Sequence record: MZ443780.1
Direction: 5' to 3' (one strand)
DNA length: 64,000 nucleotides
Part shown: piece after piece, positions 24,265 to 59,784 of the stretch
Numbering within the stretch: the first letter of the stretch is position 1
Layout of the letters: the number at the start of each line of letters is the position of its first letter
Made by a program: the position numbers and the translations under genes
The notes under the pieces: generated by a model
Seen by the model: the letters and a program-made list of their open reading frames with translations, nothing else
Databases searched by the model: none
Told to the model about the DNA's origin: nothing

Positions 24265-24335
24265 ACGTCTGATCGACCTGAAAAGTGACTGTGACTTAAC
24301 TCAAACTGAGACTGCCCAAGATCTGCGAAGTCTGC

Positions 24336-24386
24336 AAATAACTGGTCAAAATAGCTCTTTATACGCACACGCGCCCGTGATACAAT
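24336..24386 (+). promoter_or_regulatory. early sigma70 promoter with conserved upstream element
   Basis: AAATAA-CTGGTCAAAAT-N5-TTTATA-N17-TACAAT with extended -10 TG. Confidence 0.8.
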
Positions 24387-24439
24387 ATATGCAGACGCTA
24401 CACAACGTAGCACATACAACTAATGCTGAGGAGCATACA

Positions 24440-24766
24440 ATGAAAACTTACAACGCTGAGAACAAACACGAAATCGAAGAATTTGCGGCTGAGATCAACA
24501 AACGCATGAAGCGTACCGATGCGAAAGCAATCGTGACCAACGCCTACGCAGACGACGAGTTTTGTTTGATGGTTGTTGAGTGGGACGCAGAACTGAATGA
24601 AGAAACTGGCGAGTGTGGTTACTTCATTGATATCCCGAGCGAAGACGGCGAGAAGCATCGCATCACTTATGCAGGTGTGCCTCACCCCGAAGATAAAGAG
24701 TACGTGTTCTACTTCGACATGTACGAAGAATTGATGCCTGAGATTGAACGTCTGAATCTCGCCTAA
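24440..24766 (+). CDS. acidic early protein
   Basis: CTGAGGAG RBS, 108 aa. Confidence 0.8.
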   Translation: MKTYNAENKHEIEEFAAEINKRMKRTDAKAIVTNAYADDEFCLMVVEWDAELNEETGECGYFIDIPSEDGEKHRITYAGVPHPEDKEYVFYFDMYEELMPEIERLNLA

Positions 24767-24768
24767 GC

Positions 24769-24819
24769 AAATATCTGGTCAAAAGCGCCGTTGCTTGAAA
24801 ACGTGTGACGGCGTATTAT
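24769..24819 (+). promoter_or_regulatory. early sigma70 promoter with conserved upstream element
   Basis: AAATAT-CTGGTCAAAAG-N5-TTGCTT-N17-TATTAT. Confidence 0.8.
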
Positions 24820-24868
24820 GTAATCTCTAGCGCAATGACGCGCTCAACACTGAAAGAGGCAACAAACA

Positions 24869-25108
24869 ATGGCTGAGAAACAAGTAGTTCTTGATCTGAT
24901 CGCAGACGTAGCATCACCTACAGAAGTTATCTTCGAAGACGGTCAATCGTCTAATGAGTGGCTCGCACCGTACGATTTGCGCCTCACCGTGTCACTGCAC
25001 ACTGGCCCGAACGGCTACCCCGAAGTGAACATCATCGGCGATGAAGACGATCTGAAACGCTTCTTGTCTGAACACGACTTTGAAGGTTCAGTCGAAGACG
25101 TGAAGTAA
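24869..25108 (+). CDS. small acidic early protein
   Basis: GAGG RBS, 79 aa, GPNGYPEV motif. Confidence 0.8.
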   Translation: MAEKQVVLDLIADVASPTEVIFEDGQSSNEWLAPYDLRLTVSLHTGPNGYPEVNIIGDEDDLKRFLSEHDFEGSVEDVK

Positions 25109-25115
25109 GTTGTTT

Positions 25116-25142
25116 GAGCGGGGCTTCGGCCTCGCTTCTTTT
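25116..25142 (+). terminator. intrinsic terminator
   Basis: GAGCGGGGC-TTCG-GCCTCGCTT followed by CTTTT. Confidence 0.7.
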
Positions 25143-25165
25143 ATTCTGCCGAAGAGAAAGTAACT

Positions 25166-25672
25166 ATGAAGAATCAATATCTCGTTATTCGCATGAGTGC
25201 CGTTGACATATACGACCGTACATTTCTAATGCGTGGCTTCAATATGAAGCGCATCGAAAAAGTTATCGGCGTTATCGCTGTCGTCGGTGAAGGTCTGCTG
25301 ACTTCTGATTCTAAGATGTACCATCTGTCTCGCGTCAACATCGATCTGTTGGCGTCTGATACACAGCAGAGCTGGGGACGCCTGAGCTGGTCAAGCATTG
25401 ACGCCACGCTCATTGATTCTGGTATGCGCCGTCTGCCGCCAGAACTGCTTGATAGAATTAAGGCAATGCGCACTAATCGCATCTATTACGGCGTCGATAC
25501 GACGATACCAGAAGCGTTTCGTGACTGTCACACTGAGTTGGTGTATACGCCAAGCGCCGCTCGCAAGTTAGTAGATCGCGCCGAGAAACTTGCTGCGTTG
25601 AGTGAGTACAGCGTAGAAGATATTATCGCTCACCTGAAAACGCGCATTGAAGGCGTCACTATAGCTTTCTAA
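25166..25672 (+). CDS. hypothetical protein
   Basis: 168 aa. Confidence 0.7.
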   Translation: MKNQYLVIRMSAVDIYDRTFLMRGFNMKRIEKVIGVIAVVGEGLLTSDSKMYHLSRVNIDLLASDTQQSWGRLSWSSIDATLIDSGMRRLPPELLDRIKAMRTNRIYYGVDTTIPEAFRDCHTELVYTPSAARKLVDRAEKLAALSEYSVEDIIAHLKTRIEGVTIAF

Positions 25673-25734
25673 TCGTTATCTGACTGTGGCGTTACGGCGC
25701 CACGTACTTCACAACTTAATTGAGAGAACATGCC

Positions 25735-26349
25735 ATGAACCTCGTAACAACTTTCTTCGTCAAACGCTCTTACGCTTCACTCGCCGCTGGCAGTTTTGCA
25801 ATCGACGCCAAACACGTTCAAGAGCTGATTGAATGTGAGTGCATGATCGTACACGTCGATACAGGCCATCGTAATGCGTTCGCCTTGAAGAACATCGCTC
25901 TGACGCCTATCGACGAGCACAACGTGCGCGTTACGTTCGACCCTCTGACAGACGCACACGCAATGCCGTCTTCTGTCATGCCGAAAGATCTGAAAGGCAG
26001 TATTCAAGTCTATGGCATGTACAGTGAAGATTTGAAAGACGTGCCGCGCTTCGACGTGTCAAACGATGCGTCAGGCAACAACCCAAACATTCTGTCGCTT
26101 GATCTTGAATGCCGCCAGCGCCTGATGCAGTATCACGGTGGCATGTGTACGCTGACCGAACTGTGCCTGTCACTCTTTGAGAAAGGCATTCACATTGTCG
26201 ATATTCATCACAACGTCAAACAGCACGATCACGGCGTCGGCGTTTTCACTCAGCGCTATCGCACTGCGTTTGAGCTGAACAAAGACAACGGCATTAAACG
26301 CCACAACGATGATTATCCAGTTCTGGCGCGTATGACTGTTTTAATGTAA
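25735..26349 (+). CDS. hypothetical protein
   Basis: GAGAG RBS, 204 aa. Confidence 0.7.
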   Translation: MNLVTTFFVKRSYASLAAGSFAIDAKHVQELIECECMIVHVDTGHRNAFALKNIALTPIDEHNVRVTFDPLTDAHAMPSSVMPKDLKGSIQVYGMYSEDLKDVPRFDVSNDASGNNPNILSLDLECRQRLMQYHGGMCTLTELCLSLFEKGIHIVDIHHNVKQHDHGVGVFTQRYRTAFELNKDNGIKRHNDDYPVLARMTVLM

Positions 26350-26358
26350 ACACACAAT

Positions 26359-26382
26359 GCCTCGCAACGTGCGGGGCTTTTT
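26359..26382 (+). terminator. intrinsic terminator
   Basis: GCCTCGCA/TGCGGGGC stem followed by T5. Confidence 0.7.
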
Positions 26383-26398
26383 CTATTTGGAGAATGTT

Positions 26399-26659
26399 AT
26401 GGTATACGAACGCGAAGAACTTCAAGACATGCCGCTTGATGTGCTCTACCATCTGGCGTGCGCTAAAGGTCTGCTGGACGATCTTGACGATGACGACGAT
26501 GTGCCTGATCGTGAAGTGCTGGTGGGCATGATTCTTGATGCGCAGAGCGAAGATGAACAGGCAGAACAAAACGCTGCCGACAAACAACGCGCCGAAGATG
26601 ATCGCGATCCGCGTATCAATCGTCGTGATGGCCAAGACGGATCTGAGGACTACTGCTAA
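26399..26659 (+). CDS. acidic protein with HeH/Rho-N-like motif
   Basis: GGAG RBS; YEREELQDMPLDVLYHLACAKGL...DREVLVGMIL. Confidence 0.7.
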   Translation: MVYEREELQDMPLDVLYHLACAKGLLDDLDDDDDVPDREVLVGMILDAQSEDEQAEQNAADKQRAEDDRDPRINRRDGQDGSEDYC

Positions 26660-26877
26660 TGTCACCTACTGAACTGAATGAATATGTTCACCTCGTACTG
26701 ACGCCTGTTGCTATGGCGTGGCGCGAGCAATTCCCCAAAAAGAAACAAACGATTTGTACGATGAAGACGCCGTACTCTTGTCGTATCAAGTTCGTTGATG
26801 ACCGTGAAGTTGAAAAAGCGTGGCAAGCATTCTGCCGCACACACGGTATCAAGAACGAAGAAACACTCGAAGTCTAA
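26659..26877 (+). CDS. hypothetical protein
   Basis: 72 aa, TAATG coupling. Confidence 0.7.
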   Translation: MSPTELNEYVHLVLTPVAMAWREQFPKKKQTICTMKTPYSCRIKFVDDREVEKAWQAFCRTHGIKNEETLEV

Positions 26878-26881
26878 ATTC

Positions 26882-26910
26882 AAGGGCTGCCATTGCTGGT
26901 GGCCCTTTTT
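26882..26910 (+). terminator. intrinsic terminator
   Basis: AAGGGC...GCCCTT stem followed by TTT. Confidence 0.7.
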
Positions 26911-26915
26911 CATTT

Positions 26916-26924
26916 CTGTAAATA
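26916..26924 (+). promoter_or_regulatory. putative phage-sigma promoter motif CTGTAAATA
   Basis: Directly after a terminator, 32 nt upstream of ATG 26957. Confidence 0.5.
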
Positions 26925-26956
26925 CTCCGCACACTAACCACAACGCGGAACTTATA

Positions 26957-27325
26957 ATGCGCCGATTTGTACTCATCTTCAACGTCAGTCAGGAAGAGCT
27001 AGATGGCCGTCGTTTCTTTCAGGCAAAGCTCAACATTGTCTCATCACTGCGCCGCGCTCGCTGTGTGTTTCTCGTCGTGCGCGAGACAAAGCAGGTACTC
27101 TGTGTCTCTGAGCTAACGTATCAACCAAGCGTCGAACCCGGCATTCGTCAGGTAGACTTCGACGCCCCGCGTGATGTGACCGCATACGTTCTGCCATTCA
27201 CCGAACTCACTACTGCTATGGTCAATAACTCGCAGGACCCAAGCATTCGCTACTTTGGCCGTCAGCTTGAAATGGATGCTGACCAGCTTAAACGTTTTCA
27301 CACTCAACTGGAGATTGTCCCATGA
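26957..27325 (+). CDS. hypothetical protein
   Basis: 122 aa from ATG 26957. Confidence 0.7.
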   Translation: MRRFVLIFNVSQEELDGRRFFQAKLNIVSSLRRARCVFLVVRETKQVLCVSELTYQPSVEPGIRQVDFDAPRDVTAYVLPFTELTTAMVNNSQDPSIRYFGRQLEMDADQLKRFHTQLEIVP

Positions 27326-27564
27326 GTCAGTCATTAGGCGCTTCACTTGGTGCTCGCTTCGCTGTTAGCTCTCAGGAGAATATTGAGCGCCGTAAGAAGC
27401 GTGACCCGAAGAACAAGACGCTGACCTGTGCTGGCACTACAGCGCAGTACAATGCTGTCGGTATGCTCGCTAACAAACTCGACGTGTCACGCTCGCGTGT
27501 CATTGAATTGGCAATCGAAGAACTGCTGGCGAAGCATGGTATTAAGGTTGAGAGTGATGAGTAA
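27322..27564 (+). CDS. ribbon-helix-helix (CopG/Arc-like) DNA-binding protein
   Basis: KTLTC strand followed by QYNAVGMLANKLDVSRSRVIELAIEELL. Confidence 0.7.
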   Translation: MSQSLGASLGARFAVSSQENIERRKKRDPKNKTLTCAGTTAQYNAVGMLANKLDVSRSRVIELAIEELLAKHGIKVESDE

Positions 27565-27922
27565 CGATACGCATATCTTTTGCCGACTGTATGGCGTACA
27601 GCACCGACTGCGTATCATCGCATATAACTTCCTCAAACCTCAGCACATGATAACAGTCGATCCCTCTGACGTGCTCAAGATGATGCCTCGCATTATGGTG
27701 GGAGCAGCATACGACACGTACACGCCGTACAAAGTGATCAAGGCGGGACGTGCTGACTTCAAAATCCGCCTGATAGAGCGCACTGATGCGAACGTGTGGC
27801 GCTACGTGTTCGAAGACTATCGAGGCAAGCTGTTTGAGACTTACTTAAATCGGAGAACGTATGATACAGCTGGGGACGATAACAGCGTTAAGTCTAAAAG
27901 ACAAAGCGCCACGATCCACTGA
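27557..27922 (+). CDS. hypothetical protein
   Basis: ATG 27557 coupled to the RHH gene. Confidence 0.65.
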   Translation: MSNDTHIFCRLYGVQHRLRIIAYNFLKPQHMITVDPSDVLKMMPRIMVGAAYDTYTPYKVIKAGRADFKIRLIERTDANVWRYVFEDYRGKLFETYLNRRTYDTAGDDNSVKSKRQSATIH

Positions 27923-28496: not shown

Positions 28497-28801
28497 AGTA
28501 TCTGGCTTGCATTGAACTGAGCACAAGGGAAGGTAATCTGAATCTCCCTATCCTGCCTAAGTGTGATATGCAGGCGTTTCTGCTTGACAGCCGTACTAAA
28601 ACGAAAGTGCCCATAAAGCTCAATGCCACAAACGTGGTGAAAGTCTGCGGCAAGACGTGTGGCAGCCTACAATGGTTCGACTGCGTTAATCTGCTTATCT
28701 GGTCGTCGTTCGAGCCAGAGCGTTTCACGCTGTATATTGAGCGGACACTCAAAGCAGACGAGACAGCAAGCGCCCTGCAATCTGCTGAACTCTGCAAATA
28801 A
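28484..28801 (+). CDS. hypothetical protein
   Basis: 105 aa filling the gap before a promoter; start uncertain. Confidence 0.5.
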   Translation: MDNLKYLACIELSTREGNLNLPILPKCDMQAFLLDSRTKTKVPIKLNATNVVKVCGKTCGSLQWFDCVNLLIWSSFEPERFTLYIERTLKADETASALQSAELCK

Positions 28802-28846
28802 CTGGTCAAAATAGCCGTTCTATTTAGTAGCTCGATATGATATACT
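28796..28846 (+). promoter_or_regulatory. early sigma70 promoter with conserved upstream element
   Basis: AAATAA-CTGGTCAAAAT-N5-TTCTAT-N17-TATACT with TG extension. Confidence 0.8.
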
Positions 28847-28894
28847 AAGAGCGAGCGCTATTGCTCAAAAACAACTAAAGCTGAGGAGCTTATC

Positions 28895-29335: not shown

Positions 29336-29406
29336 GTGATTTGTGTTGAGCATTCGCTGAGTGCTCAATGAAAATCCAAACAACACCCTAAGCTGAGGAG
29401 CTTAAC

Positions 29407-29724: not shown

Positions 29725-29787
29725 GATTTGTGAAGGGCATTCGCTGAGTGTCCTTTGAAAATCAAACACTGTTCTGAGGAGAACAAC

Positions 29788-30141: not shown

Positions 30142-30212
30142 TTGTTGCTCGCAGATTCTTACGAGAGTCTGCTGTCAACATAACCCAAACCACCTAAGCT
30201 GAGGAGCTTAAC

Positions 30213-30623: not shown

Positions 30624-30629
30624 ATAACA

Positions 30630-30660: not shown

Positions 30661-30705
30661 ACATTCGGGTCGTTAACCTGAATACTTAACTTGAAGGGAA
30701 ATAAA

Positions 30706-33742: not shown

Positions 33743-34276
33743 ATGGCAAAGTCACTGGGTGTATACATGACGTATATTCTGCGTCATAAACCTCAGGACA
33801 TTGGCATCGCAATGGACACCCAAGGATGGGTGTCTGTTCTGGATTTCTTGCAGAAAGCAAAGTACAAAAAGCAAGTGACCAGAGAGATGCTGATCGAAGA
33901 AGTAGAAGCGGACGATAAAGGTCGTTTTGAGTTTAACTCGAACAAGTCCAAGATTCGCTGTGTTCAAGGGCATTCTGTTGAGCACGTCATTCTCAATCTC
34001 GAACCTTGGACTGATTGTTCGCCTCTGTATCATGGCACCGCAGAGAAGAATGTCGCTGCTATCCAGCATGAAGGTATTCTCCGACGTAAACGCAAGCACG
34101 TCCATATCAGCAACGATATCGAAACAGCTCGACGTGTTGGACAACGCCACGGTGTACCTGTTGTGTTTCAAATCGACACACAGGCAATGATCACTCACGG
34201 TTATAAGTTCTACCGCGCAGAGAACGGAGTCATCCTCACCGATCACGTACCGTCGCGCTATATCAGATTGGTGTAA
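33743..34276 (+). CDS. kptA: RNA 2'-phosphotransferase (KptA/Tpt1 family)
   Basis: LRHKP..MD..GW, IRCVQGHS, LYHGT, RKHVHIS and V.LT..VP motifs. Confidence 0.93.
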   Translation: MAKSLGVYMTYILRHKPQDIGIAMDTQGWVSVLDFLQKAKYKKQVTREMLIEEVEADDKGRFEFNSNKSKIRCVQGHSVEHVILNLEPWTDCSPLYHGTAEKNVAAIQHEGILRRKRKHVHISNDIETARRVGQRHGVPVVFQIDTQAMITHGYKFYRAENGVILTDHVPSRYIRLV

Positions 34277-34278: not shown

Positions 34279-34680
34279 ATGGATAAAACGTACATGCGAC
34301 ATTGGGGATCACGCTACGTGCGGTCCTCATCTGGCAAGTGGTATTCAGTTCATGGACGTGAAGGAACGTGGGTGACGAATCGCTACGGCACATCATTCTA
34401 TCGTAGCGGTTCAGAAGTGTGGCGCGACATATCTGCCGCAGATCGTAATGCGTTGGAACGAGAGTTAGTTTCCCGTACACGCAAAGACTTCAAAGACACT
34501 AAGCTCAAGTATAGCCACTGGGGCAAGATTGTCCTGACTATTGCGAGACAGTCAGAAGAAGAAAACAACCCACACACGTCAGAGCTAGCTGAGATGCTTG
34601 AGTCGCTGAGACAGACTTTCTACGGACAGAAGGTACAGCAACTAAGCACAATATTGGACGAAATAGGGCTTAAAGAGTAG
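34279..34680 (+). CDS. hypothetical protein
   Basis: 133 aa. Confidence 0.65.
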   Translation: MDKTYMRHWGSRYVRSSSGKWYSVHGREGTWVTNRYGTSFYRSGSEVWRDISAADRNALERELVSRTRKDFKDTKLKYSHWGKIVLTIARQSEEENNPHTSELAEMLESLRQTFYGQKVQQLSTILDEIGLKE

Positions 34681-34698
34681 GCTCGTTTGTGATATAAT
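34648..34698 (+). promoter_or_regulatory. early sigma70 promoter with conserved upstream element
   Basis: ACAATA-TTGGACGAAAT-N5-TTAAAG-N17-TATAAT with TG extension. Confidence 0.75.
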
Positions 34699-34747
34699 AG
34701 AGATGAACGCTAGACACTCGTTTAGCTACTTACATGAGGATATGTAT

Positions 34748-36202
34748 ATGAAAAAGATTAAATACACTTTTCGCCTGACTGACCTTGTTCGCATCTCCAA
34801 AACTCTGCCTGTAACTATGAAGCATTTCGATGGTGCAGGAGAAGAAGCCATTGTTGTTGGTCGTCAGAATGAAAAAGACGAGTACGCGTTACACATCAAA
34901 CATCATGGTTATGTTGCATGGTACCCAGCCGAGTGCCTGACGCTGATCTCTCACAATAACGGTGAGCTGCTTGATCAGTGGGAAGCAGGTGACTACGGTC
35001 GAGATAAGAAGAAGAAACGCAAGATGCCAGAGGCGCTGCGTAACTTCACTGCTATTCTGCCTGTAACGTGTAACGCTGATTGCTCGTTCTGCCCAGAGAA
35101 AGAGATGGAGCAGAAAGCTGCCCAGCAAGAATGGCAAGACGGTTTGATTGCTTCGATCAAACGCATGTACAAGAAAACGAAGTTCGACCACGTATCAATC
35201 TCTGGTGGCGAACCTACACTGCGCACGAAGTTCTTGTTTGAGACTATCGACCGCATTCAGAAAGAAACGCCAATCAAGAAAGTAGGCTTGACGTCTAACG
35301 GCTTCTTCCTTGAAAAGCAAAACAGCACGTTCGACTTCTTAGACCGTAACACTACGCCTGAGATGACGAGCAAGCTGTCGCATCTGAATATCAGTATGCA
35401 CTCGTTCAATCGTGATCTCGCAAACAAGATCATGGGCGTGAACTACAAACAGACTCTGGAAGATCTTGTGCGCTTCCGCCGTCAGCTTGGTCGTGAAGTT
35501 AGTTTCCACATTAACTTTGTGATCAACGACAAGACCGGCTCAATCACCGAAGAGTTCAAACGTGCCGCCAACTTCATGCGAGCGAACCCGTTCATCGACA
35601 TTGTGTTCCGTGTTGACTACAACGATGTTGAACTGTCCAAAGCACTGCGCAAATATGCTATGGATTATGCAGAGTGGGAAGAAGAAAGTCGCATCGCCGC
35701 TGCTGCTCGTAAGAAATGTAGAATGAAGGAGCCGAAAGCACCTCACATCGTTCAGAAGTTTGATCGTTTCTTTGGAGGCAGCACTAACGATGAGGCTGAG
35801 AGTGCATGGACTACAGGCTGCCCGTCATGCTTCACCCATGCGTCTAACATCGTCAATAACAGTCGCGCATTCTTGAAAGCGTCTTCATACGAACCGAACG
35901 ACGACGAAGAAGAATACACTGAGCTGGTCTATCACATGGACGGCGCTCTGTATTGGGACTGGACTCGTAATGACCCTGTACCAGAACCACGCAGCAAACG
36001 TTTCGACTTCGAAATGAAAGAAGAAGCTGTCACTCAACCAAAAGCTGTTAAGAAACCTAAGAAGGCCAAACCTGTTGCTATGACCAGCAAGCAGAAGAAA
36101 GAAGTTGAGCGTGAGTCTGGTGTTGATAGCTGCAACTATTCATCTCGCTGTGGTTTTGTTGGCGGTAACGGTCGCTGTGGCTTCGGCAGCGGTCTGTGCT
36201 AA
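34748..36202 (+). CDS. radical SAM enzyme with N-terminal SH3-like module and Cys/Gly-rich C-tail
   Basis: CNADCSFC (CxxxCxxC), SISGGEPT, GLTSNG and LNISMHS motifs; GAGGA RBS. Confidence 0.88.
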   Translation: MKKIKYTFRLTDLVRISKTLPVTMKHFDGAGEEAIVVGRQNEKDEYALHIKHHGYVAWYPAECLTLISHNNGELLDQWEAGDYGRDKKKKRKMPEALRNFTAILPVTCNADCSFCPEKEMEQKAAQQEWQDGLIASIKRMYKKTKFDHVSISGGEPTLRTKFLFETIDRIQKETPIKKVGLTSNGFFLEKQNSTFDFLDRNTTPEMTSKLSHLNISMHSFNRDLANKIMGVNYKQTLEDLVRFRRQLGREVSFHINFVINDKTGSITEEFKRAANFMRANPFIDIVFRVDYNDVELSKALRKYAMDYAEWEEESRIAAAARKKCRMKEPKAPHIVQKFDRFFGGSTNDEAESAWTTGCPSCFTHASNIVNNSRAFLKASSYEPNDDEEEYTELVYHMDGALYWDWTRNDPVPEPRSKRFDFEMKEEAVTQPKAVKKPKKAKPVAMTSKQKKEVERESGVDSCNYSSRCGFVGGNGRCGFGSGLC

Positions 36203-37711: not shown

Positions 37712-37975
37712 ATGGCTGTAGGCTTTGTCAAAGATGATGGCGTCAACGATACCATCGAAACAAACGTGCTGAATGAGATCGACCGCGCTCGTTCAGAACT
37801 TCAAGGCGCAGGTTCTGATTACTGCGTCAACCCTGATTGCGGTGAGAAGATTCCTGTGATGCGTAAACTCGCTATGCCCAATGCGCGTTACTGCATCAAC
37901 TGTCAGGCAGCGCACGACGGCACTGCTAACGTCGGCTATAATCGCCGTGGCTCAAAAGATTCTCAACTGAGGTAG
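37712..37975 (+). CDS. TraR/DksA C4 zinc-finger transcription factor
   Basis: YCVNPDCGEKIPVMRKLAMPNARYCINCQ and N-terminal GFVKDDGVND motif (TraR/YbiI type). Confidence 0.85.
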   Translation: MAVGFVKDDGVNDTIETNVLNEIDRARSELQGAGSDYCVNPDCGEKIPVMRKLAMPNARYCINCQAAHDGTANVGYNRRGSKDSQLR

Positions 37976-42528: not shown

Positions 42529-43509
42529 ATGAGACTTGGATTCGCCTGTAAGCTGATTGACGCACAAGGCAAGCAACCGTACCCAAACAAAAGCATTAGC
42601 TACACGCACTTTGCAAAACTCGATCTCGACCAGCGTCGTCAAAAGCTACTCGACATTGTGACCGTCAACCTGACGTCACTGTACGATATGATCGCACACG
42701 TTGCGATGTTACGCCGAGACATGCGCATGTTTCGTATCACCAGCGAATTGCTCCCGCTGTTCACGCACCCACAAGTTGCGCACTTATACCAAGAGCGTGA
42801 ACTTGCCGCGCACATCGAACACTGGTTGTGGAAGTGCGGTACGTTAGCTCAGTCATCTGGCGTTAGACTTTCGTTTCACCCAGGTCAGTTTACCGTGCTC
42901 GCATCTGATCGACCTGACGTTGTGCTCAATTCAATCCACGAACTTGAGTACCATGCGTACTGCGCCTATCACATGGGGTACGGTCGACGCTTTCAAGACT
43001 TCAAGATCAACATTCACCTGTCTGGTCGTCTTGGTGCTAAAGGCTTTCGTGCTGCACACTCAAAACTTTCTGATCACTGCCGAAAGATGTTGACCGTTGA
43101 GAACGACGAGATCACGTCCAGCATTGAGGACTGTCTTGAGCTTGCGGACATTTGCCCGATTGTGCTCGATATTCATCATCACTGGGTAATGACTAACGAG
43201 TACATACAGCCGACCGATGATCGTGTGCAACGTGTCATTGAGTCGTGGCGAGGCATTACACCGACAGCGCATTACTCTGTGTCTAAGCCTGAGTTCGTGC
43301 CGTCGCGTGGTCTGCCAGATCAAAACAAGCTGACTGCTAATCGAATGCAGCTACGCGCACACTCTGACTACTACCACAACGATGACGTAAACGAGTGGGC
43401 CCTCAGCTTCACTGATTTTGACTTAATGTGCGAGTCGAAAGCGAAGAATCTCGCTCGTGCAAAATTGGCGTGTTTTACAGCGAACTCTGCAAATAACTGG
43501 ACAAAATAA
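42529..43509 (+). CDS. uvsE: UV-damage endonuclease (UvsE/UVDE family)
   Basis: MRLGFACK, RLSFHPGQFTVL, INIH, TVENDE, VLDIHHH, HYS, HSD and MCESKAK motifs. Confidence 0.93.
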   Translation: MRLGFACKLIDAQGKQPYPNKSISYTHFAKLDLDQRRQKLLDIVTVNLTSLYDMIAHVAMLRRDMRMFRITSELLPLFTHPQVAHLYQERELAAHIEHWLWKCGTLAQSSGVRLSFHPGQFTVLASDRPDVVLNSIHELEYHAYCAYHMGYGRRFQDFKINIHLSGRLGAKGFRAAHSKLSDHCRKMLTVENDEITSSIEDCLELADICPIVLDIHHHWVMTNEYIQPTDDRVQRVIESWRGITPTAHYSVSKPEFVPSRGLPDQNKLTANRMQLRAHSDYYHNDDVNEWALSFTDFDLMCESKAKNLARAKLACFTANSANNWTK

Positions 43510-43542
43510 GGCTTGTTTCTGATGGTTGCCCTATGATACACT
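43491..43542 (+). promoter_or_regulatory. early sigma70 promoter with conserved upstream element
   Basis: AAATAA-CTGGACAAAAT-N5-TTGTTT-N18-TACACT with TG extension. Confidence 0.75.
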
Positions 43543-43589
43543 GTTTATGAGCACTTTTGCTCGTTATAACTAGACAGAGGAAATAGACA

Positions 43590-44606: not shown

Positions 44607-44835
44607 CGCTACCCACAAATACTACGGCGAAGCATATCAAGGTACGTGGCTGAAAGAGATCGCTCTCAACGGCCAGCAAGTATCAGAAGCCGAGTTTAAA
44701 GACTTCGAGACCGCAAAGGAATGCGCGGATAAGTTACATCAGGTTTGCGACATAGGGTGGATCGTCTATAACGCTTTTTCAGAAAGAGCGATGTACGACA
44801 CCCGTACTGAAAGCCAAGAGTCTGTAAATAACTAG
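44584..44835 (+). CDS. hypothetical protein
   Basis: GGAGG RBS. Confidence 0.7.
   Translation: MARYHVFSATHKYYGEAYQGTWLKEIALNGQQVSEAEFKDFETAKECADKLHQVCDIGWIVYNAFSERAMYDTRTESQESVNN
44822..44830 (+). promoter_or_regulatory. putative phage-sigma promoter motif CTGTAAATA
   Basis: At the end of the 44584 gene, 77 nt upstream of ATG 44908. Confidence 0.35.
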
Positions 44836-45728: not shown

Positions 45729-46917
45729 TCTGAATGAACTGTCTGTGGCCGCTCGTCGTCTGTTTGCTAACGGTGATGCTCATGTGCGTGATGCGCTTCG
45801 TGCCGTAGCAAACACGGTTATCGCAGACTCTGCTCGATTCAAGTATGAGTTCTCCGAGCCTGCTGTCGAGTCTGTCTATCGTACTCTCGAAAGTCTGACG
45901 TTCTCAGGTGACGGTACGTTGCTTCTGCCCGCAGATGAAATTTATGCGTTTGACCAGCTTCTGAACAAGAAGTACCGCGACAACTTCTACTCGTCTGTGT
46001 GCAACGTTGCGTTCACTCAACGGCAAACCAACCCGCGTACTTCAATGCTCGAAGCGTTCCCGCGCAGCAACGAATACATGTGCGAAATTCTGGCTCGCGC
46101 ATTTGTGTGGGTGCTGATGCAGACTGGACTGGATAATCTTCTGGTAAAAGATTGCATCGTTGCTGGTCACACGCGTCTGCCGCAATTCATTATTGCGTTG
46201 CAGACAGAAGGTCAAGACGAAGGCTACACCAGCCTGTTCTCGCTATTCAACCCACTGTCCGATGATTATCAGGTAGTGTCTGCTACAAACTTCTTCCCAG
46301 AAGAATACCGTAAGCAGTTGCTGGCAGAAGCTACAGGGAATCTGCCGCCTGAGTACCGAGAAGTTGACAACATGACATTCGAACAACTCGGTGCGCTGTT
46401 GACTCGTCTTAACTTGGTAGGCCCAGCGTCTGCTAAGAAGAAATATCGCTGTGGTTGTGAAGGTGATTGCGAAGATGATTGCGATGCGTCTGGCTCCTCT
46501 TACAATAACCTTGAAGACTTCGATGACGCCAGCGATCTGCGTGACGTCTTCTACAACCACTACGGTTGGCCTGACGACGATATCGAAATTGACGACTCTC
46601 TGTGGGTAACTGGTAAGTCGAAGATGAAAGTCAACATCGACATTCCGGTAGTAACTCTTGCCGAACCTAAAGCTGCGAAAGAGCGTGGCTACAGGTCTAA
46701 AAAGATGCCGAAGAAAGCTATGGCTAAGTCCGGCACTCGTATTGAACTGGACTACACCCAACAACTGTGGCATCCGGTAACTCTCGATACCGAAGGCGCG
46801 AATCGCGTGTTTGCTATCACTCTCGTTTCTCGTCACACGTCTGGTGTCAATCGCGCAGTAGCTACTGCCCGTGAAGCGTTCGCAATTGCCGCCGTACTTG
46901 CTGATCTTGACAAATAA
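45721..46917 (+). CDS. hypothetical protein
   Basis: AAGGAG RBS before ATG 45721, 398 aa. Confidence 0.8.
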   Translation: MSDLNELSVAARRLFANGDAHVRDALRAVANTVIADSARFKYEFSEPAVESVYRTLESLTFSGDGTLLLPADEIYAFDQLLNKKYRDNFYSSVCNVAFTQRQTNPRTSMLEAFPRSNEYMCEILARAFVWVLMQTGLDNLLVKDCIVAGHTRLPQFIIALQTEGQDEGYTSLFSLFNPLSDDYQVVSATNFFPEEYRKQLLAEATGNLPPEYREVDNMTFEQLGALLTRLNLVGPASAKKKYRCGCEGDCEDDCDASGSSYNNLEDFDDASDLRDVFYNHYGWPDDDIEIDDSLWVTGKSKMKVNIDIPVVTLAEPKAAKERGYRSKKMPKKAMAKSGTRIELDYTQQLWHPVTLDTEGANRVFAITLVSRHTSGVNRAVATAREAFAIAAVLADLDK

Positions 46918-46962
46918 CTGGACAAACTAGCGCTTCGATTTGAGGCGCTTTTCTGCTATAAT
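46912..46962 (+). promoter_or_regulatory. early sigma70 promoter with conserved upstream element
   Basis: AAATAA-CTGGACAAACT-N5-TTCGAT-N17-TATAAT with TG extension. Confidence 0.8.
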
Positions 46963-47029
46963 AGCAGCTAGAGCAATATAGCTCTCAACGTCATTTTTAA
47001 CTATACGTTTATCACGGGAAACTTTTATA

Positions 47030-47332
47030 ATGTCACGCAAAATTTCACGCAAGAAAGCAGTCGACCTGATGTCCAAAACTTACAACGCAAAACATCCTGA
47101 ATATCTTCCGCGTCTGTTAGCCGAAGATATGGACTCGACTCACCTGTTCGAGTTTCGTGAGATGGTCGTTGCTAAGATTCAGGCTGGCGAAGACCCAACT
47201 AAAGTTGTCGATGATATGATCGACACTGCGATTCGTGTGACTCAGGTTCGTCGTCGCACCAGCAACGACTACAACCCGAAAATTGCAGACGTACTTACTG
47301 ACGAACTGCGTGATATGCTCCGTAACCTCTAA
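47030..47332 (+). CDS. hypothetical protein
   Basis: 100 aa. Confidence 0.75.
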   Translation: MSRKISRKKAVDLMSKTYNAKHPEYLPRLLAEDMDSTHLFEFREMVVAKIQAGEDPTKVVDDMIDTAIRVTQVRRRTSNDYNPKIADVLTDELRDMLRNL

Positions 47333-50994: not shown

Positions 50995-51945
50995 ATGACA
51001 ATGACAAAGACTGCTACCTTCCCGTGGAAAAGTGCCGACCATCGTAACGTGGATTTCGCACTGCGTATCAACAAACTGAATCTGATGGAAACGTGGAACT
51101 ACGTTAAGGCTAATAACAAGCCTGACGCAGAAGGTGACGCGCTTCTATCCATGATGCACTACCACTCTACCGAGCACATGCGTCAGGTAACAGTGATTGC
51201 TCTCTGGTTGTTAGAGCGTGAGTCAGAACAAGCATGGCAGTATGACGTCGGTGCGTTACCTCTGGCAGTCGCGTGTATGTTCCACGACATGAATCACTCG
51301 CTCGGTAAAACTGACGACGAGCAGAACGTGGCCGTAGCCCAAGAGGCATTCAAGCAGTATCTCACTGTTACCGAAGATCAGCGTATCATCGATCAACAGG
51401 ACATTATTCTTGAGCTGATCAAAATCACTCAATTCCCGTACTCGGGGACACGTCAGCCGAAGAATCTTGTCGAGCGCTGCATCCGTGATGCGGATATCCT
51501 GTACGGTATGCAGGAAGATGTTATCGACTATGTAATGTTTTCGCTTCGCCGTGAACTGAATCGTCGTCCGAAAACTTCTACGTTGAAGTATGACCGAGAG
51601 CAGTGGGCAGCAATGCGCATTGACTTCCTGTTCTCAATCGAAATCTATACGCCGACAGCCGAAGCAATCATGGGCTGGGAGTTGTCTTCGACCAACGACA
51701 ATAGCCACGAAGATAAATTGCAGGCGTGGGTGAGCGATGACCCTGTGTTCTACGTTACCACCGCAAATGCGTTGAAAGCGAATGACGTGTTGTTTATCGA
51801 CACGCCAGAAGACGCAACGACGAAGCGCCGTCTGATCGAGCGCATTACAGACATGGGTGTTGGCTTCAACATCTATTTCAATGACGGTGACTCGCTTCAT
51901 CTGCGCAACGGTGAGAAGTGCGTAGCAGTCGAAAGACGCAAATAA
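50995..51945 (+). CDS. HD-domain phosphohydrolase
   Basis: YHSTEH, MFHDMNH and IRDAD motifs. Confidence 0.85.
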   Translation: MTMTKTATFPWKSADHRNVDFALRINKLNLMETWNYVKANNKPDAEGDALLSMMHYHSTEHMRQVTVIALWLLERESEQAWQYDVGALPLAVACMFHDMNHSLGKTDDEQNVAVAQEAFKQYLTVTEDQRIIDQQDIILELIKITQFPYSGTRQPKNLVERCIRDADILYGMQEDVIDYVMFSLRRELNRRPKTSTLKYDREQWAAMRIDFLFSIEIYTPTAEAIMGWELSSTNDNSHEDKLQAWVSDDPVFYVTTANALKANDVLFIDTPEDATTKRRLIERITDMGVGFNIYFNDGDSLHLRNGEKCVAVERRK

Positions 51946-51990
51946 TAGGCTGAAATCGCCGTACTGTCTAAAGTGCGTTTATGCTACAAT
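51940..51990 (+). promoter_or_regulatory. early sigma70 promoter, degenerate upstream element
   Basis: AAATAA-TAGGCTGAAAT-N5-TACTGT-N17-TACAAT with TG extension. Confidence 0.65.
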
Positions 51991-52022
51991 ATGCGTAGAC
52001 GCACTAACAAAGAGAAAACGAT

Positions 52023-53581: not shown

Positions 53582-53582
53582 C

Positions 53583-54161: not shown

Positions 54162-54208
54162 TCTATCAATAGCGGCAGCGCTCACGGGTGCTGCACAGGA
54201 GAAACATT

Positions 54209-55858: not shown

Positions 55859-55893
55859 TCGTCTAACCATACCTAACATTGTAGGGAATCAAA

Positions 55894-56346
55894 ATGAAAG
55901 AGAAAAATATTCTGGTACTGAATCGTGTTCGCCTCGTTATGGAAGATATGCTCGTTGAGCAATTCGCTGACTTGGCCCGCAAAGACCAAGAACGTGCAGG
56001 CGACCTGAGCGTTATCATGCTGTCTAAGATTCAGCAGGGTGTTAACGCTATGCTTGCGAACGGTAACCCAGAAGCATGTTGTCGTGCTGATGTTGCGTGG
56101 ACAGAATGCTCGTTCTTATCGACGACTGGTCTGTTCGTGATTGCATCGTCTGCCGATGCTGAGGTGCTCAATCACTTTGAAGACTCGGACTATCTATGCC
56201 ACATACGGGCTATCGAGCACTTCGCAAAAGAAGCTGGCTTCAAGTTCACTGTTGAGCCTATTCGTGTAGCGTTTCCATTCGAGAGCACGATCATCCCAGA
56301 AGCTCTGCGCTACGTGCCACCTACAGATAACTTGACTAAGCGCTAA
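55894..56346 (+). CDS. hypothetical protein
   Basis: 150 aa. Confidence 0.7.
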   Translation: MKEKNILVLNRVRLVMEDMLVEQFADLARKDQERAGDLSVIMLSKIQQGVNAMLANGNPEACCRADVAWTECSFLSTTGLFVIASSADAEVLNHFEDSDYLCHIRAIEHFAKEAGFKFTVEPIRVAFPFESTIIPEALRYVPPTDNLTKR

Positions 56347-56352
56347 AACAGC

Positions 56353-56403
56353 AAAAATCTGGACAAAATGAGGGTAGTATGCGAAACTGCCCTATGCTAT
56401 AAT
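56353..56403 (+). promoter_or_regulatory. early sigma70 promoter with conserved upstream element
   Basis: AAAAAT-CTGGACAAAAT-N5-TAGTAT-N17-TATAAT with TG extension. Confidence 0.8.
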
Positions 56404-56454
56404 AGAAGCGTAGCATGTGCTACGCTTTCTAACGTATGTCTGAGGAGACAAATC

Positions 56455-56916
56455 ATGCAAGAGCATAAAGCAACCCCGGCCGATATCGAACTGCAAGATC
56501 GTATGATGGAAGCGGGTGTCCAGCGCATCATCGAATTGAAACCTGAGTGGATCGACGTTTGTACTGCGGGACTTCGTTTGTACCTGACCGTGTGCGATCA
56601 AATCGGCGGTCCGATTCCTGAACTGCGTTTCGTCCATAACAGCAAACCTTGTCGCATTCAATTCAACTTGAACGAATCGGCAGAAGGTACCGAGTTCACT
56701 GCGAACGATATCGATCACGAAAAGCAAATGGCAATATGTGATGCCATTCTTGATGTGGCCGACGCGAACGAAGATGGCCACTCGCTGTTAGACCTTGCCA
56801 TTTGTTCTGGTCGCCTGTTCATGATTGGTTATGACGGGCTTGCGGGTACGGTTGAGAAAGTTTGCTTCCGTTTCGCCAAGAAGAACTACACAATGAATCT
56901 GGTCAAAGGTGAATAA
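56455..56916 (+). CDS. hypothetical acidic early protein
   Basis: CTGAGGAG RBS before ATG 56455. Confidence 0.8.
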   Translation: MQEHKATPADIELQDRMMEAGVQRIIELKPEWIDVCTAGLRLYLTVCDQIGGPIPELRFVHNSKPCRIQFNLNESAEGTEFTANDIDHEKQMAICDAILDVADANEDGHSLLDLAICSGRLFMIGYDGLAGTVEKVCFRFAKKNYTMNLVKGE

Positions 56917-56917
56917 C

Positions 56918-57607
56918 ATGAAACTCTCGCCAACTATGTTGAAACGCAGCAAGCTAAACCCTGATGTGTTTGCGCTTGTTCGTGAAGGTGAAGTGCTGTC
57001 CTCATTCAAACCGAGCAAGCTCTTTGCGGCGCTCAATGCCGTTGTTAAAGACAGCGGGCTGAAAGAAGTCGATATCGTGTGGCGTGACGGTACGCGCACT
57101 GTAGAACATCTCATTGTTCACCACACGCGCAAGCTAGTATCGACTGACACAATCATGAACTACTACAACGTGTGCCTGATGCTTCGCGCTCAAGGCGCTG
57201 CTGCTAGTCTGTCTACGCCTGTAGACATTCGTACTATGTTTGATTCGAACGGGCCTCTGATTAGCGAGATTCACATTGACCCTGAAATCGTCGATAAGCT
57301 GGTGGAAGCACTTACACCCAAGCACCCTATGTTTGCAGACGCGCACGGCATCGAAGAAGATGATGATGTGTTCGATGATGACGACGATTATGACCCTGAT
57401 GATGACTTCGACGATGAGGATTATCTCTCCGAAGATATCTCACCAGAAGAAGATCGTCTGAGCATTAGCGCTTGGGGATATCGCGCCGAAGACTGGACGA
57501 CTACTTTGACGGACGACGATATTCAGGAAGTGCATAGCCTCGAAGTGGGTATTGACCCTGACATTGAATTGCCACTCGCACCTGACGCGAAGGACAAATA
57601 CTTCTAA
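56918..57607 (+). CDS. hypothetical protein with Asp-rich C-terminal half
   Basis: AAGGTG RBS. Confidence 0.75.
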   Translation: MKLSPTMLKRSKLNPDVFALVREGEVLSSFKPSKLFAALNAVVKDSGLKEVDIVWRDGTRTVEHLIVHHTRKLVSTDTIMNYYNVCLMLRAQGAAASLSTPVDIRTMFDSNGPLISEIHIDPEIVDKLVEALTPKHPMFADAHGIEEDDDVFDDDDDYDPDDDFDDEDYLSEDISPEEDRLSISAWGYRAEDWTTTLTDDDIQEVHSLEVGIDPDIELPLAPDAKDKYF

Positions 57608-57798
57608 TGAAAAGCACTAACGAACTGGTCAAAGAATTGAAGCAACGCGGCGAGCTTATTATTGACGAGCGAAACAAAGACATGCTGCCTGATTTGACAT
57701 TCACGCTTGATTGCATGTGTATCACCTACAAGAAGCGGGAAGTAGAAACAACTAAGCGCGGCCGCGTTGTCAGAATCAAACTGACCAGTATTCACTGA
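57607..57798 (+). CDS. hypothetical small protein
   Basis: TAATG coupling, 63 aa. Confidence 0.6.
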   Translation: MKSTNELVKELKQRGELIIDERNKDMLPDLTFTLDCMCITYKKREVETTKRGRVVRIKLTSIH

Positions 57799-57937
57799 TG
57801 TTCTCTTTGGCCCGACTGCCCAGCGATGCTCATCCCCCAGAAGAGGTGCCTCGCGCAGAGGCATGGCAGTTCGGGTCCTTTTTGAAGCGCACTTGCGAGT
57901 ACGCTGCATAAAGTAAAAACAAACAGGAGGCTGTTGA

Positions 57938-58399
57938 ATGAAATTCACCGAAGTAAGTAAAGATGCACAGGTCATTCTCATGGGTTCCGCACTTGCGGGA
58001 GTTATCGAAGTGTTTGGCCGCGATGCCGATGACGGCGGTCGCAAGCTGCTGATTACTGCATTGAATCAGATTGGCCTGACGCCTGACGAGTTCAAGGCTC
58101 TGATCAACAACATGACAATTTCAGTCAGGGCAGAAGTTGGTGCAGTGCGTGTGCTCGAAGCAGATCCGGACGATGACTTCGAAGAAGACGCCGAAGACTT
58201 CGGTGCCTGTGCTGAGTGCGATCGTCCAGTAGAAGATTGCGTGTGTGACGATGAAGACGACGACCTCGATACGTCAGAGCAACGTCCAGGCAATCTGAAC
58301 GATGACGGTCGGACAGACGAAAATGGCTGGCAGAATCTCGATGAAGATGCCGTCTGCCGTGTATGCCACCAACAAGTGTGTGAGTGCCGAGGCTACTGA
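57938..58399 (+). CDS. acidic protein with two C-terminal CxxC...CxC zinc motifs
   Basis: CAECDRPVEDCVC and CRVCHQQVCECR; AGGAGG RBS. Confidence 0.75.
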   Translation: MKFTEVSKDAQVILMGSALAGVIEVFGRDADDGGRKLLITALNQIGLTPDEFKALINNMTISVRAEVGAVRVLEADPDDDFEEDAEDFGACAECDRPVEDCVCDDEDDDLDTSEQRPGNLNDDGRTDENGWQNLDEDAVCRVCHQQVCECRGY

Positions 58400-58611
58400 T
58401 GAGCAGACCGACACAAGACGAAATCAATGGTCAGATAGCTGCCTCCGAAGAGCAACGCTATAACGAGCAGATCGCTCAATACGATGACTGGACAGACGAC
58501 GAGCTGGCTGATGCTGTAGAAGCAAACGAGCTTGTGGGTGAAGACGAAGACGCAAGCGACTACAGCCGCGAAGCGCTGATTCGAATGCTGCTGGCGGATC
58601 GACGATTCTAA
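58399..58611 (+). CDS. small acidic HeH-like protein
   Basis: YDDWTDDELADAV...YSREALIRMLL; TGATG coupling. Confidence 0.7.
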   Translation: MSRPTQDEINGQIAASEEQRYNEQIAQYDDWTDDELADAVEANELVGEDEDASDYSREALIRMLLADRRF

Positions 58612-58613
58612 GC

Positions 58614-58664
58614 AAAAATCTGGACAAAATGAGGGTTGTCTCAAAACAGCGCCCCTGATACAAT
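58614..58664 (+). promoter_or_regulatory. early sigma70 promoter with conserved upstream element
   Basis: AAAAAT-CTGGACAAAAT-N5-TTGTCT-N17-TACAAT with TG extension. Confidence 0.85.
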
Positions 58665-58669
58665 ATAAA

Positions 58670-58860
58670 GACAGCGAGACATGTTCTCTCTGTTATGTGC
58701 CTATAACGTTTTGACCGTGTGTTTATCTTTTCCCGGGCACACGGTCCTTTTTAAAGTCGCTTCGATGAGGCTGCTTTAAAAAGGGTTCAATACCCTTTGA
58801 GCGCACCGGGCTTTACGCGGTTTCCGCCTTGTGTGCTCTCATGCTAAACCGCAAAGGAAA
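58670..58860 (+). ncRNA. candidate structured 5' leader / small RNA
   Basis: About 200-nt gene-free leader with 9-bp and 11-bp perfect stems and overlapping alternative pairings. Confidence 0.45.
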
Positions 58861-58865
58861 TAGAT

Positions 58866-59678
58866 ATGCCAAACTTACGTGCTAAACCAGAAGACAAATT
58901 TTCTAAAGCTCGTTCTGCGAAGAACTCACCTGAACGTCAGGCTGCTGCTGAGAAGAAACGCACAACCCCACGCGGTCCGTCTTCTGCTAAACCTCGTCAG
59001 TTGCCGCCGGGCTATGGCTATAAGTCAAAAGCTACAGGCGAACGTGCGCCAGAGCGTGACGATAAAGAGTCCCAGAAACCTGATTTGAGTAAGAAAGACT
59101 GGGTTGCTCGTCGTGACGCAACGCCGAAGATGCGTGATGAAGAACGTGTATTCAATCTCGTTCACGCAATTCTGGCTGCATGGAAAGCGGATATCGGACA
59201 CGCCGAACATACGGCAGCATCTTCTGGTATCATCAAAGTGTCTCGTCGTAAAGTTGAAGGCGCATTGCGCGATCTCAAGAATACGCGCTTCACTAAAATC
59301 CCAACGCTCATCAATGAAATTCTGACACACTCTGATGTGTGTGAGGAATTCGGGATGTGGGTGTACGTCGAGCACGACACGCCGGATTGGATCTTCGTGC
59401 GTCTGCCTGAAGACAGCACGCCTGTGCTTCGCGCTGATATCGTCTACGACCGCACAGGTCAAACTGCTACGACGATCACGACTTCGAGTGAACCGCTGCT
59501 TGAAGTCTTAGGGGAAGACGACGAGCCAGAAATGCTCGAATGCAATGAGCGCGATATTGAAGACCTTGAAACTAAGGCAATGCGCAAAGAGCTGATCGAC
59601 AAGGGCATCATCAAGCCAGAAGCTGCTGATAAGCTGAGTCGACCGGATCTGATGAAGCTGTTAGCGTACTACGCATAA
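58866..59678 (+). CDS. protein with basic disordered N-tail and C-terminal HeH-like motif
   Basis: AAGGA RBS, 270 aa. Confidence 0.8.
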   Translation: MPNLRAKPEDKFSKARSAKNSPERQAAAEKKRTTPRGPSSAKPRQLPPGYGYKSKATGERAPERDDKESQKPDLSKKDWVARRDATPKMRDEERVFNLVHAILAAWKADIGHAEHTAASSGIIKVSRRKVEGALRDLKNTRFTKIPTLINEILTHSDVCEEFGMWVYVEHDTPDWIFVRLPEDSTPVLRADIVYDRTGQTATTITTSSEPLLEVLGEDDEPEMLECNERDIEDLETKAMRKELIDKGIIKPEAADKLSRPDLMKLLAYYA

Positions 59679-59732
59679 GCAATAACGAGCAGGGCGCTGA
59701 AATATAGCTGCCCTGCTATCTGCGAAGTATGC

Positions 59733-59784
59733 AGAAAACTGGACAAAATCGTGGTTGTTATCTGACAGCCACCTATGCTACAAT
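59733..59784 (+). promoter_or_regulatory. early sigma70 promoter with conserved upstream element
   Basis: AGAAAA-CTGGACAAAAT-N5-TTGTTA-N18-TACAAT with TG extension. Confidence 0.8.

Follow-up and report, generated by a model that had tools for sequence, protein, structure and literature searches.

The stretch of DNA considered here (the window, 64,000 nucleotides) is identical in sequence to positions 186001-250000 of the record of Erwinia phage pEa_SNUABM_40 (MZ443780.1, Alexandravirus, 267 kb); the near-identical RefSeq genome NC_061445.1 (266 kb) serves as the whole-genome reference. Within the window, a block of small open reading frames (ORFs) that appear to be early genes contains ten promoter cassettes, all on the plus strand and all at gene boundaries, which share a long conserved upstream element, termed the module below. 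Offsets are counted from the first A of the AAAWAW tract (offset 0), the position by which each promoter is named; negative positions are relative to the predicted transcription start.

Each cassette is predicted to run from the end of the upstream gene through the 26-bp module, a weak -35 (TT..), an extended -10 (TGnTAYAMT), an A/T-rich discriminator, a 5' stem-loop and a Shine-Dalgarno sequence to a start codon. The ten cassettes are as follows.

24321..24411, plus strand: cassette 1 (promoter 24336); CTGC block 24321-24335, module 24327-24352, -35 TTTATA 24358-24363, extended -10 TGATACAAT 24378-24386, predicted start near 24393, 5' hairpin 24397-24411, gene from 24440; preceded by a strong terminator-like hairpin 3' of the gene ending at 24233.
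24760..24844, plus strand: cassette 2 (promoter 24769); module 24760-24785, -35 TTGCTT 24791-24796, a spacer hairpin, -10 TATTAT 24814-24819 without TGn (the sole such site), 5' hairpin 24829-24844, gene from 24869; the stop of the upstream gene is at 24766.
28781..28866, plus strand: cassette 3 (promoter 28796); far-upstream block from 28781, module 28787-28812, -35 TTCTAT 28818-28823, extended -10 TGATATACT 28838-28846, 5' hairpin about 28849-28866, gene from 28895; the upstream gene, which ends at 28801, has its stop codon within AAATAA.
34639..34726, plus strand: cassette 4 (promoter 34648); module 34639-34664 with a TTGGAC core, -35 TTAAAG 34670-34675, terminator-like spacer hairpin 34666-34684, extended -10 TGATATAAT 34690-34698, 5' hairpin 34709-34726, radical-SAM (S-adenosylmethionine) gene from 34748.
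43478..43564, plus strand: cassette 5 (promoter 43491); far-upstream block from 43478, module 43482-43507, -35 TTGTTT 43513-43518, 18-nt spacer, extended -10 TGATACACT 43534-43542, 5' hairpin about 43547-43564, gene from 43590.
46903..46985, plus strand: cassette 6 (promoter 46912); module 46903-46928, -35 TTCGAT 46934-46939, terminator-like spacer hairpin 46929-46949 followed by TTTTCT, extended -10 TGCTATAAT 46954-46962, 5' hairpin 46970-46985, gene from 47030.
51931..52003, plus strand: cassette 7 (promoter 51940); module 51931-51956 with a TAGGCT core, -35 TACTGT 51962-51967, spacer hairpin 51960-51977, extended -10 TGCTACAAT 51982-51990, a short leader of 26 nt, gene from 52023.
56344..56428, plus strand: cassette 8 (promoter 56353); module 56344-56369, -35 TAGTAT 56375-56380, a spacer hairpin, extended -10 TGCTATAAT 56395-56403, strong 10-bp 5' hairpin 56405-56428, gene from about 56455 (start placed by mapping from the RefSeq record).
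58605..58694, plus strand: cassette 9 (promoter 58614); module 58605-58630, -35 TTGTCT 58636-58641, extended -10 TGATACAAT 58656-58664, 5' hairpin 58670-58694.
59718..59806, plus strand: cassette 10 (promoter 59733); far-upstream block from 59718, module 59724-59749, -35 TTGTTA 59755-59760, 18-nt spacer with a 9-bp hairpin, extended -10 TGCTACAAT 59776-59784, 5' hairpin 59792-59806, gene from 59845.

An earlier reading made from the letters alone (the sequence-only reading) had described ten promoters in a common layout and a fixed register, and both descriptions stand. With at most one mismatch allowed, CTGGWCAAAAT matches the window 11 times against 2.3 expected, a count that none of 100 shuffles reaches; eight of the 11 matches belong to the ten promoters, and the remaining two promoters (34648 and 51940) are those with TTGGAC and TAGGCT cores. 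Eight sites have the start of the -10 hexamer at offset 45, and the other two have it at 46; the hexamer reads TAnnnT in all ten. TGn precedes it in nine of the ten, as had been reported, the exception being 24769 with GCG. The -35 is indeed poorly conserved, its common part being mainly a T at position 1 (10/10) and position 2 (8/10), and the CTGC...CTGC block reported far upstream of four promoters is present at 24321, 28781, 43478 and 59718. The description of these promoters as early also fits, in that they look like sigma-70-type promoters of the small-ORF block.

A looser search of the whole of NC_061445.1 recovers the same ten sites and two more outside the window, twelve in total.

Record position 257511 of NC_061445.1: an extra member, before the topoisomerase II gene.
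Record position 261598 of NC_061445.1: an extra member, before the next gene block and just downstream of a CTGTAAATA motif.

The sites are thereby restricted to the small-ORF block and these two in the topoisomerase region. At record position 261598 two promoter types stand in tandem, the CTGTAAATA motif and then the module promoter. When five genomes were scanned for the extended -10 without requiring the module, no intergenic TGnTAYAMT promoter lacking the module was found among the matches listed (part of Alexandra not covered).

Information profiles were calculated for five genomes of three genera (the window, AD1, Alexandra, SNUABM_7, and Y3). All five agree that conserved positions run from offset -9 to 16 (about -66 to -41), 26 bases with the consensus S A A n T n n G C A n A W A W Y W G G n Y R A A A T; on the 3' side follow a G/C-rich pentamer and then the invariant T that opens the -35. 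The conserved block announced by the sequence-only reading is therefore real but starts earlier, at offset -9, and the GC before AAAWAW is nearly invariant; of the CTGGWC core, the GG is invariant across the five genomes, whereas the other core bases vary. In each genome the module holds 25.6-29.0 bits, roughly double the core promoter, in which the extended -10 contributes 10.8-12.4 bits and the -35 2.4-4.1 bits; a control block further upstream holds 0.3-1.7 bits, and 15.4 bits are required to specify 12 sites in the genome. A conserved, G/C-containing block of 26-29 bits in fixed register does extend well beyond a textbook upstream (UP) element, as had been proposed. Non-orthologous sites within a genome have an identity of 0.64 for the module and 0.75 for the extended -10, while their flanks, spacers, and leaders are at chance level (0.26-0.33); recent duplication of whole cassettes does not explain the likeness, since the sites have nothing but these two parts in common. 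Between genomes, the same two parts are again the best kept at orthologous sites (module 0.72, extended -10 0.84).

The composition of the module is periodic. Over 47 distinct sites, A/T frequency swings between about 0-0.2 and 0.85-1.0, and between about -69 and -34 its strongest period is 10-10.5 bp; it is 0 at -58, -49, and -48, and 0.15 at -59. The G/C troughs fall at -66, -59/-58, -49/-48, and -39 to -36, and the A/T peaks at -65/-64, -57 to -52, -44 to -41, and -35/-34. W-G-S triplets stand at offsets -3 to -1 and 7 to 9, with a weaker third one at 17 to 19, in the same phasing of about 10 bp.

The module is found in the same register at orthologous promoters of Dickeya phage AD1, Alexandra, Snuvirus SNUABM_7, and Sasquatchvirus Y3, in eight more Alexandravirus loci (two of them from metagenome-derived contigs), and in Yoloswagvirus and Yersinia phage fHe-Yen9-02. 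Core hexamers include CTGGAC, CTGGTC, TAGGCT, TTGGAC, ATGGAC, CTGGCT, GCGGCT, and others; GG occupies offsets 8-9 (-49/-48) in 60 of 64 tabulated sites from eight phages. In Dickeya phage JA11 (Salmondvirus) the module takes the form GCAAAnnnGTGTCCAAAAT, with the hexamer again at offset 45; its core, TGTCC, corresponds to GGACA read on the other strand, with a shift of one base. Sites in JA11 lie at 3684-3785, 10956, 14902, 18985, and 22424 of locus L146; their -10 hexamers are TAAACT, TAAGAT, or TATCCT, TGn is absent, and three of the five have CTGTA... at this place. The core promoter is less well kept in JA11 than the module, and AAGGG just after the hexamer is conserved in three of its five sites. 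No relatives turned up beyond phages of Erwinia, Dickeya, and Yersinia. A scan of IMG/VR for AAAWAWCTGGWCAAAAT returned, besides Alexandravirus contigs, scattered single matches consistent with chance, and among the matches listed from a scan of 185,579 bacterial genomes for GCAAAWAWCTGGWCAAAAT, all were single ones in unrelated taxa and none was in Erwinia or Dickeya. At that stringency a host regulon does not show in the scan, though a degenerate host motif would escape it.

Other features of the cassettes are the position of the upstream gene and the stem-loops. In the annotation used, eight of the ten sites have the end of the upstream gene somewhere from offset -9 to offset +32, with three stop codons lying within AAATAA, and at eight sites the annotated start codon is 26-61 nt from the predicted start. 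A 5' stem-loop, beginning 3-10 nt past the hexamer, is common: its mean z score is -1.68 against -0.18 for random 36-mers, with z below -2 in 44% against 6.5%. Stem sequences differ among cassettes, which argues for selection on structure, and the 5' stem-loop is likely a stabiliser or an attenuator. Hairpins in the spacer between -35 and -10 are enriched and have a mean z of -1.25, with z below -2 in 36% of 73 distinct sites; three of those in the window are terminator-like, with a T run after them. An obligatory, N4-like part for the spacer hairpin is ruled out, because it occurs in only about 36% of sites and is absent from whole ortholog families. An Rfam scan of the window matched no family.

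Three of the neighbouring genes or intervals deserve mention. The gene for a UvdE UV-endonuclease (42529-43509, plus strand) runs through the module of promoter 43491 (43482-43507), so that its last six codons are set by the promoter element; AD1 has the same overlap with another stop codon. Directly behind promoter 34648 lies the gene for a large radical-SAM protein (34748-36202, plus strand). After promoter 58614 come 195 nt (58671-58865) in which no gene is annotated, up to the gene at 58866; the sequence of its 5' hairpin is kept in relatives, the sole candidate ORF there is of 32 amino acids (58681-58779), and the stretch could be a small RNA or encode a micro-protein.

This anatomy, with its register, its conservation, and its information content, is read here, tentatively and with a little less than even confidence, as a set of early promoter cassettes for host sigma-70, of the kind known from T4 as 'über' promoters and promoter(early) stem-loop (PeSL) cassettes, in which the module is an extended, helically phased UP-like element that RNA polymerase would read alone. 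We infer the use of sigma-70 from the extended -10 in nine of ten sites, TAnnnT in all ten, and the fixed 17/18-nt spacing to the T-T that begins the -35. That the polymerase would be the host's is suggested by the gene content: no RNA polymerase subunit gene is annotated in the whole of NC_061445.1, which has one 'sigma factor' only, a divergent one. Jumbo phages without a polymerase of their own rely on the host enzyme and often have sigma homologues (PMC13282480).

Host sigma-70 RNA polymerase would thus use these promoters for an early block of host-takeover genes, with the extended -10 and the upstream module compensating for the weak -35. The A/T tracts centred near -64, -54, and -43 would be minor-groove sites for two C-terminal domains of the alpha subunit (alpha-CTDs), and the G/C steps near -59/-58, -49/-48, and -40 to -36, about 10 bp apart, would fix groove geometry and the direction of bending; the upstream DNA would then lie along one face of the polymerase. 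An alternation of A/T and G/C every 10 bp is as expected for DNA bent along one protein face. The number of core forms (CTGGAC, CTGGTC, TAGGCT, TTGGAC, CGGCT, and TGTCC in JA11) means that a shape signal fits better than a directional readout of bases, and the retention of the module in JA11 next to a -10 without TGn would fit a reader in the core enzyme and not in sigma.

The likeness to UP elements, of which that of rrnB P1 is the model, includes the position (-59 to -38), a constant distance from the -35, two A tracts that lie on the subsites some 11-13 bp from each other, and compensation for a weak -35. Against the UP consensus NNAAAWWTWTTTTNNNAAANNN, which is said to come from Estrem et al. 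in 1998/1999, the A tracts fall on the proximal and distal subsites and 6-10 of 14 positions agree (background 4.4 +/- 1.6), with the T tract unmatched. The differences weigh against reading by polymerase alone. UP elements consist of A/T only and are low in information, whereas the module has conserved G/C, with invariant G/C where the reported UP consensus has its T tract, so that it deviates from the in-vitro-selected optimum exactly there, and it has a third conserved patch at -66 to -62. Reading of A/T in the minor groove by alpha-CTD does not explain the invariant C at -58 or the GG at -49/-48, and a pure shape signal should tolerate CC, GC, or CG at -49/-48, yet GG stands in 60 of 64 sites. 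The 26-29 bits of the module exceed both the 15.4 bits needed and the roughly 5 bits of each natural UP subsite, a figure from one promoter in a preprint. The literature searched also yielded no transcriptome, footprint, or in vitro results on Alexandravirus and its relatives. A precedent for doing without a -35 is a sigma-38 model with 'two UP elements instead of -35' (bioRxiv 10.1101/2020.02.05.936344).

The sequence-only reading had inferred that the block is bound by a specific protein, either an activator or a repressor. In this form, it is possible, though rather doubtful, that the module is wholly or partly the site of a dedicated sequence-specific factor and a private address of the early regulon. 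Such a factor could be an activator present at injection, either a host protein, a virion-delivered protein, or alpha modified by an injected enzyme (compare Alt of T4), or a repressor made early by the phage that turns off every early promoter at once; its site may overlap with UP function, which would explain the excess of information. The picture of the module as a private address label, at which a factor present at injection recruits polymerase or an early phage protein binds successive major grooves at -59, -49, and -39 as an off-switch, is unlikely but not negligible. The information content of about twice the core promoter argues for a factor, as do the invariant G/C positions, with GG preferred to other G/C dinucleotides and W-G-S triplets on one helical face, and the further CTGC unit one turn upstream at four sites. 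The module is also kept across related genera and three host genera while -35 and spacer drift, and in JA11 it outlasts the extended -10. A repressor would have a plausible job, since the mechanism of early shut-off in T4 is still unknown (PMC2988021).

On the other side, no stand-alone copies of the module lie away from promoters, two core forms occur in one genome, and JA11 has a near-inverted form; with the A tracts on UP subsites, the period of about 10 bp, and the several core forms, the activator or repressor that had been proposed stays putative. Direct-repeat activator sites such as PhoB boxes and the TTGC-N6-TTGC of lambda CII share with the cassettes CTGS plus A-rich units every 9-11 bp on one helix face upstream of a weak -35, but the module lies further upstream (-70 to -41) and does not match their consensus, so the likeness is a lead only. 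By eye the module matches none of the consensus sequences of Fis, IHF, CRP, DnaA, and PhoB, and comparison by eye, not a formal test, with those of LexA, sigma-54, sigma-E, and MarA gave no convincing match.

Nor does a candidate binder stand out in the early block. Pfam and PHROG scans of its 69 ORFs for DNA-binding domains gave none above threshold (virion proteins were outside the scan), and the other Pfam matches are enzymes. The only DNA-binding match is a sub-threshold one to RHH_3 in the 80-amino-acid product of 27322-27564 (plus strand; E 0.0034, 17.8 bits against a cut-off of 21.6). This protein diverges fast (37% identity in Snuvirus); homologues were detected only in Alexandravirus, Sasquatchvirus, and Snuvirus and not in the module-bearing Yoloswag, JA11, and fHe-Yen9-02. 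The suggestion that a ribbon-helix-helix (RHH) or TraR-like protein binds the module fares no better with the second candidate, at 37712-37975 (plus strand), which has a DksA/TraR-type zinc finger by Pfam and is annotated in AD1, Y3, Yoloswag, JA11, and fHe-Yen9-02. The DksA/TraR family acts on RNA polymerase and is not known to bind DNA. Most of the early promoters in the window are A/T-rich just after the -10 and are expected to be insensitive to a factor of this type. The best-conserved early product, a basic, all-helical protein of 100 amino acids (47030-47332, plus strand; 39-93% identity), is present in every module-bearing lineage and thus has the same phyletic spread as the module; this co-occurrence is not independent evidence, however, because all carriers are relatives. 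It matches no family, and its AlphaFold model (mean predicted local distance difference test score, pLDDT, 59) is too poor for a fold search.

According to a further explanation, which is improbable, the extra conservation would be mostly a by-product of exchange between cassettes by PeSL-like recombination or gene conversion, and the G/C core would have no reader of its own. PeSL cassettes are repeated promoter and stem-loop units of T4-type phages (PMC2839356, PMC4122927), and their recombination has been shown experimentally (PMC2839356). Like them, the cassettes described here are repeated in ORFan-rich, plastic regions and show signs of exchange. In both kinds the preceding gene stops in A/T-rich sequence, and then come a promoter of sigma-70-like type, with a stem-loop in the -35/-10 spacer or immediately past the -10, a Shine-Dalgarno sequence, and the start codon. 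In AD1 the ortholog of promoter 24336 (position 822 of locus L129) has TAGGCTG in place of CTGGTCA, so that six of seven bases differ within near-identical sequence over about 40 nt, and Alexandra has hybrid cores such as CTGGCT; judged from these alignments, the swap of the core block between AD1 and 24336 points to short-tract exchange between cassettes. Homology breakpoints with four relatives also lie near cassettes (19 of 133 within 50 nt, against 7.8 +/- 2.7 expected), although this enrichment is partly trivial because cassettes occupy gene boundaries. Conversion would, however, homogenise spacer and leader too, both of which are at random level between cassettes (0.29-0.33), and GG is kept in 60 of 64 sites from lineages with almost no DNA identity in the early block. 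PeSLs are moreover defined by promoter and stem-loop, with an upstream part that is merely A/T-rich, whereas what defines the cassettes here is the strictly registered, G/C-containing module of 26 bp, and their stem-loops have no sequence in common.

That the reader is not the host sigma-70 holoenzyme but a packaged phage sigma or another polymerase, with the module as part of its recognition, is highly improbable: the phage does encode a very divergent sigma (14744-15781), and three of the five module promoters of JA11 have CTGTAAACT, which resembles a second motif class, but TGnTAYAAT at 17/18 nt from TT.. is the canonical arrangement of a sigma-70 promoter with extended -10, the distinct CTGTAAATA class, without the module, already fits the phage sigma, and early genes need expression before any phage protein, with nothing to suggest a packaged sigma or polymerase.

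The annotated phage sigma (14744-15781, plus strand) is matched over its full length by PHROG 17569 and had no match among Pfam families and PDB sequences. A second promoter-like motif, aaatCTGTAAATA, occurs six times in the window against 0.38 expected, without the module, at these positions.

3722-3730, plus strand: aaatCTGTAAATA copy.
14703-14711, plus strand: aaatCTGTAAATA copy.
20174-20182, plus strand: aaatCTGTAAATA copy.
26916-26924, plus strand: aaatCTGTAAATA copy.
44822-44830, plus strand: aaatCTGTAAATA copy.
8265-8273, minus strand: aaatCTGTAAATA copy.

Genome-wide there are 33 copies of TGTAAATA, their strand mostly that of the local gene block. The aaatCTGTAAATA-type motif looks like the T4 late TATAAATA box, and its probable reader is the phage sigma, a provisional assignment. 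At the start of the window, 305 nt of non-coding DNA (423-727) separate a gene on the minus strand, which ends at 422, from a small gene on the plus strand that begins at 728; this stretch is dense in AGCTA, GCTAG, and CTAGG repeats and could be a replication or regulatory region.

To return to polymerase-only cassettes for host sigma-70, their closest counterparts include the early promoters of T4, which have been called UP/-35/TGn/-10 'über' promoters and carry other consensus regions that lack an explanation (PMC2988021); T4-like phages have an early consensus each, A-rich at -40 to -44 (PMC1524935). Shared features are host sigma-70, a large lytic myovirus, the extended -10, A-rich sequence around -40 to -45, G/C directly ahead of a non-canonical, T-rich -35, a phage-specific extra consensus, and many small early ORFs. 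Here, in contrast, the -35 is nearly free of information, and the block extends as far as about -66, exceeds the core promoter in conservation, and has invariant G/C positions; the two phage lineages are unrelated. T4 early promoters are stimulated by the injected ADP-ribosyltransferase Alt, which modifies R265 of alpha. The early gene at 33743-34276 (plus strand) encodes a Tpt1/KptA RNA 2'-phosphotransferase, which is not a virion protein. Enzymes of this family depend on nicotinamide adenine dinucleotide (NAD) and are related to ADP-ribosyltransferases.

Phage early sigma-70 promoter cassettes with a lineage-specific extended consensus are thus already known, and the sequence-only reading went too far in suggesting an undescribed control system, given the extra consensus regions of T4-type phages (PMC2988021) and the PeSLs (PMC2839356, PMC4122927). 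No description of the promoters of Alexandravirus or its relatives was found in the literature searched. What is new is the combination of a nearly information-free -35 with a 26-bp, G/C-punctuated, phased module that holds more information than the core promoter and is kept in the related genera sampled.

Most jumbo phages lack an RNA polymerase of their own and must seize the host enzyme within seconds of injection, a step hardly studied outside T4. This lineage offers a clean case, in which the -35 has nearly been given up and recognition would go through the extended -10 and a long phased module with invariant G/C. The cassettes also mark likely points of exchange in the plastic early region. 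If a dedicated factor reads the module, that factor would be a missing regulator of early transcription or early shut-off, and the cassettes would represent a new device for early-transcription control in sigma-dependent jumbo phages. If polymerase alone reads it, the notion of a UP-type element would become wider, and the cassettes would provide very strong, compact promoters for Erwinia, Dickeya, and Yersinia.

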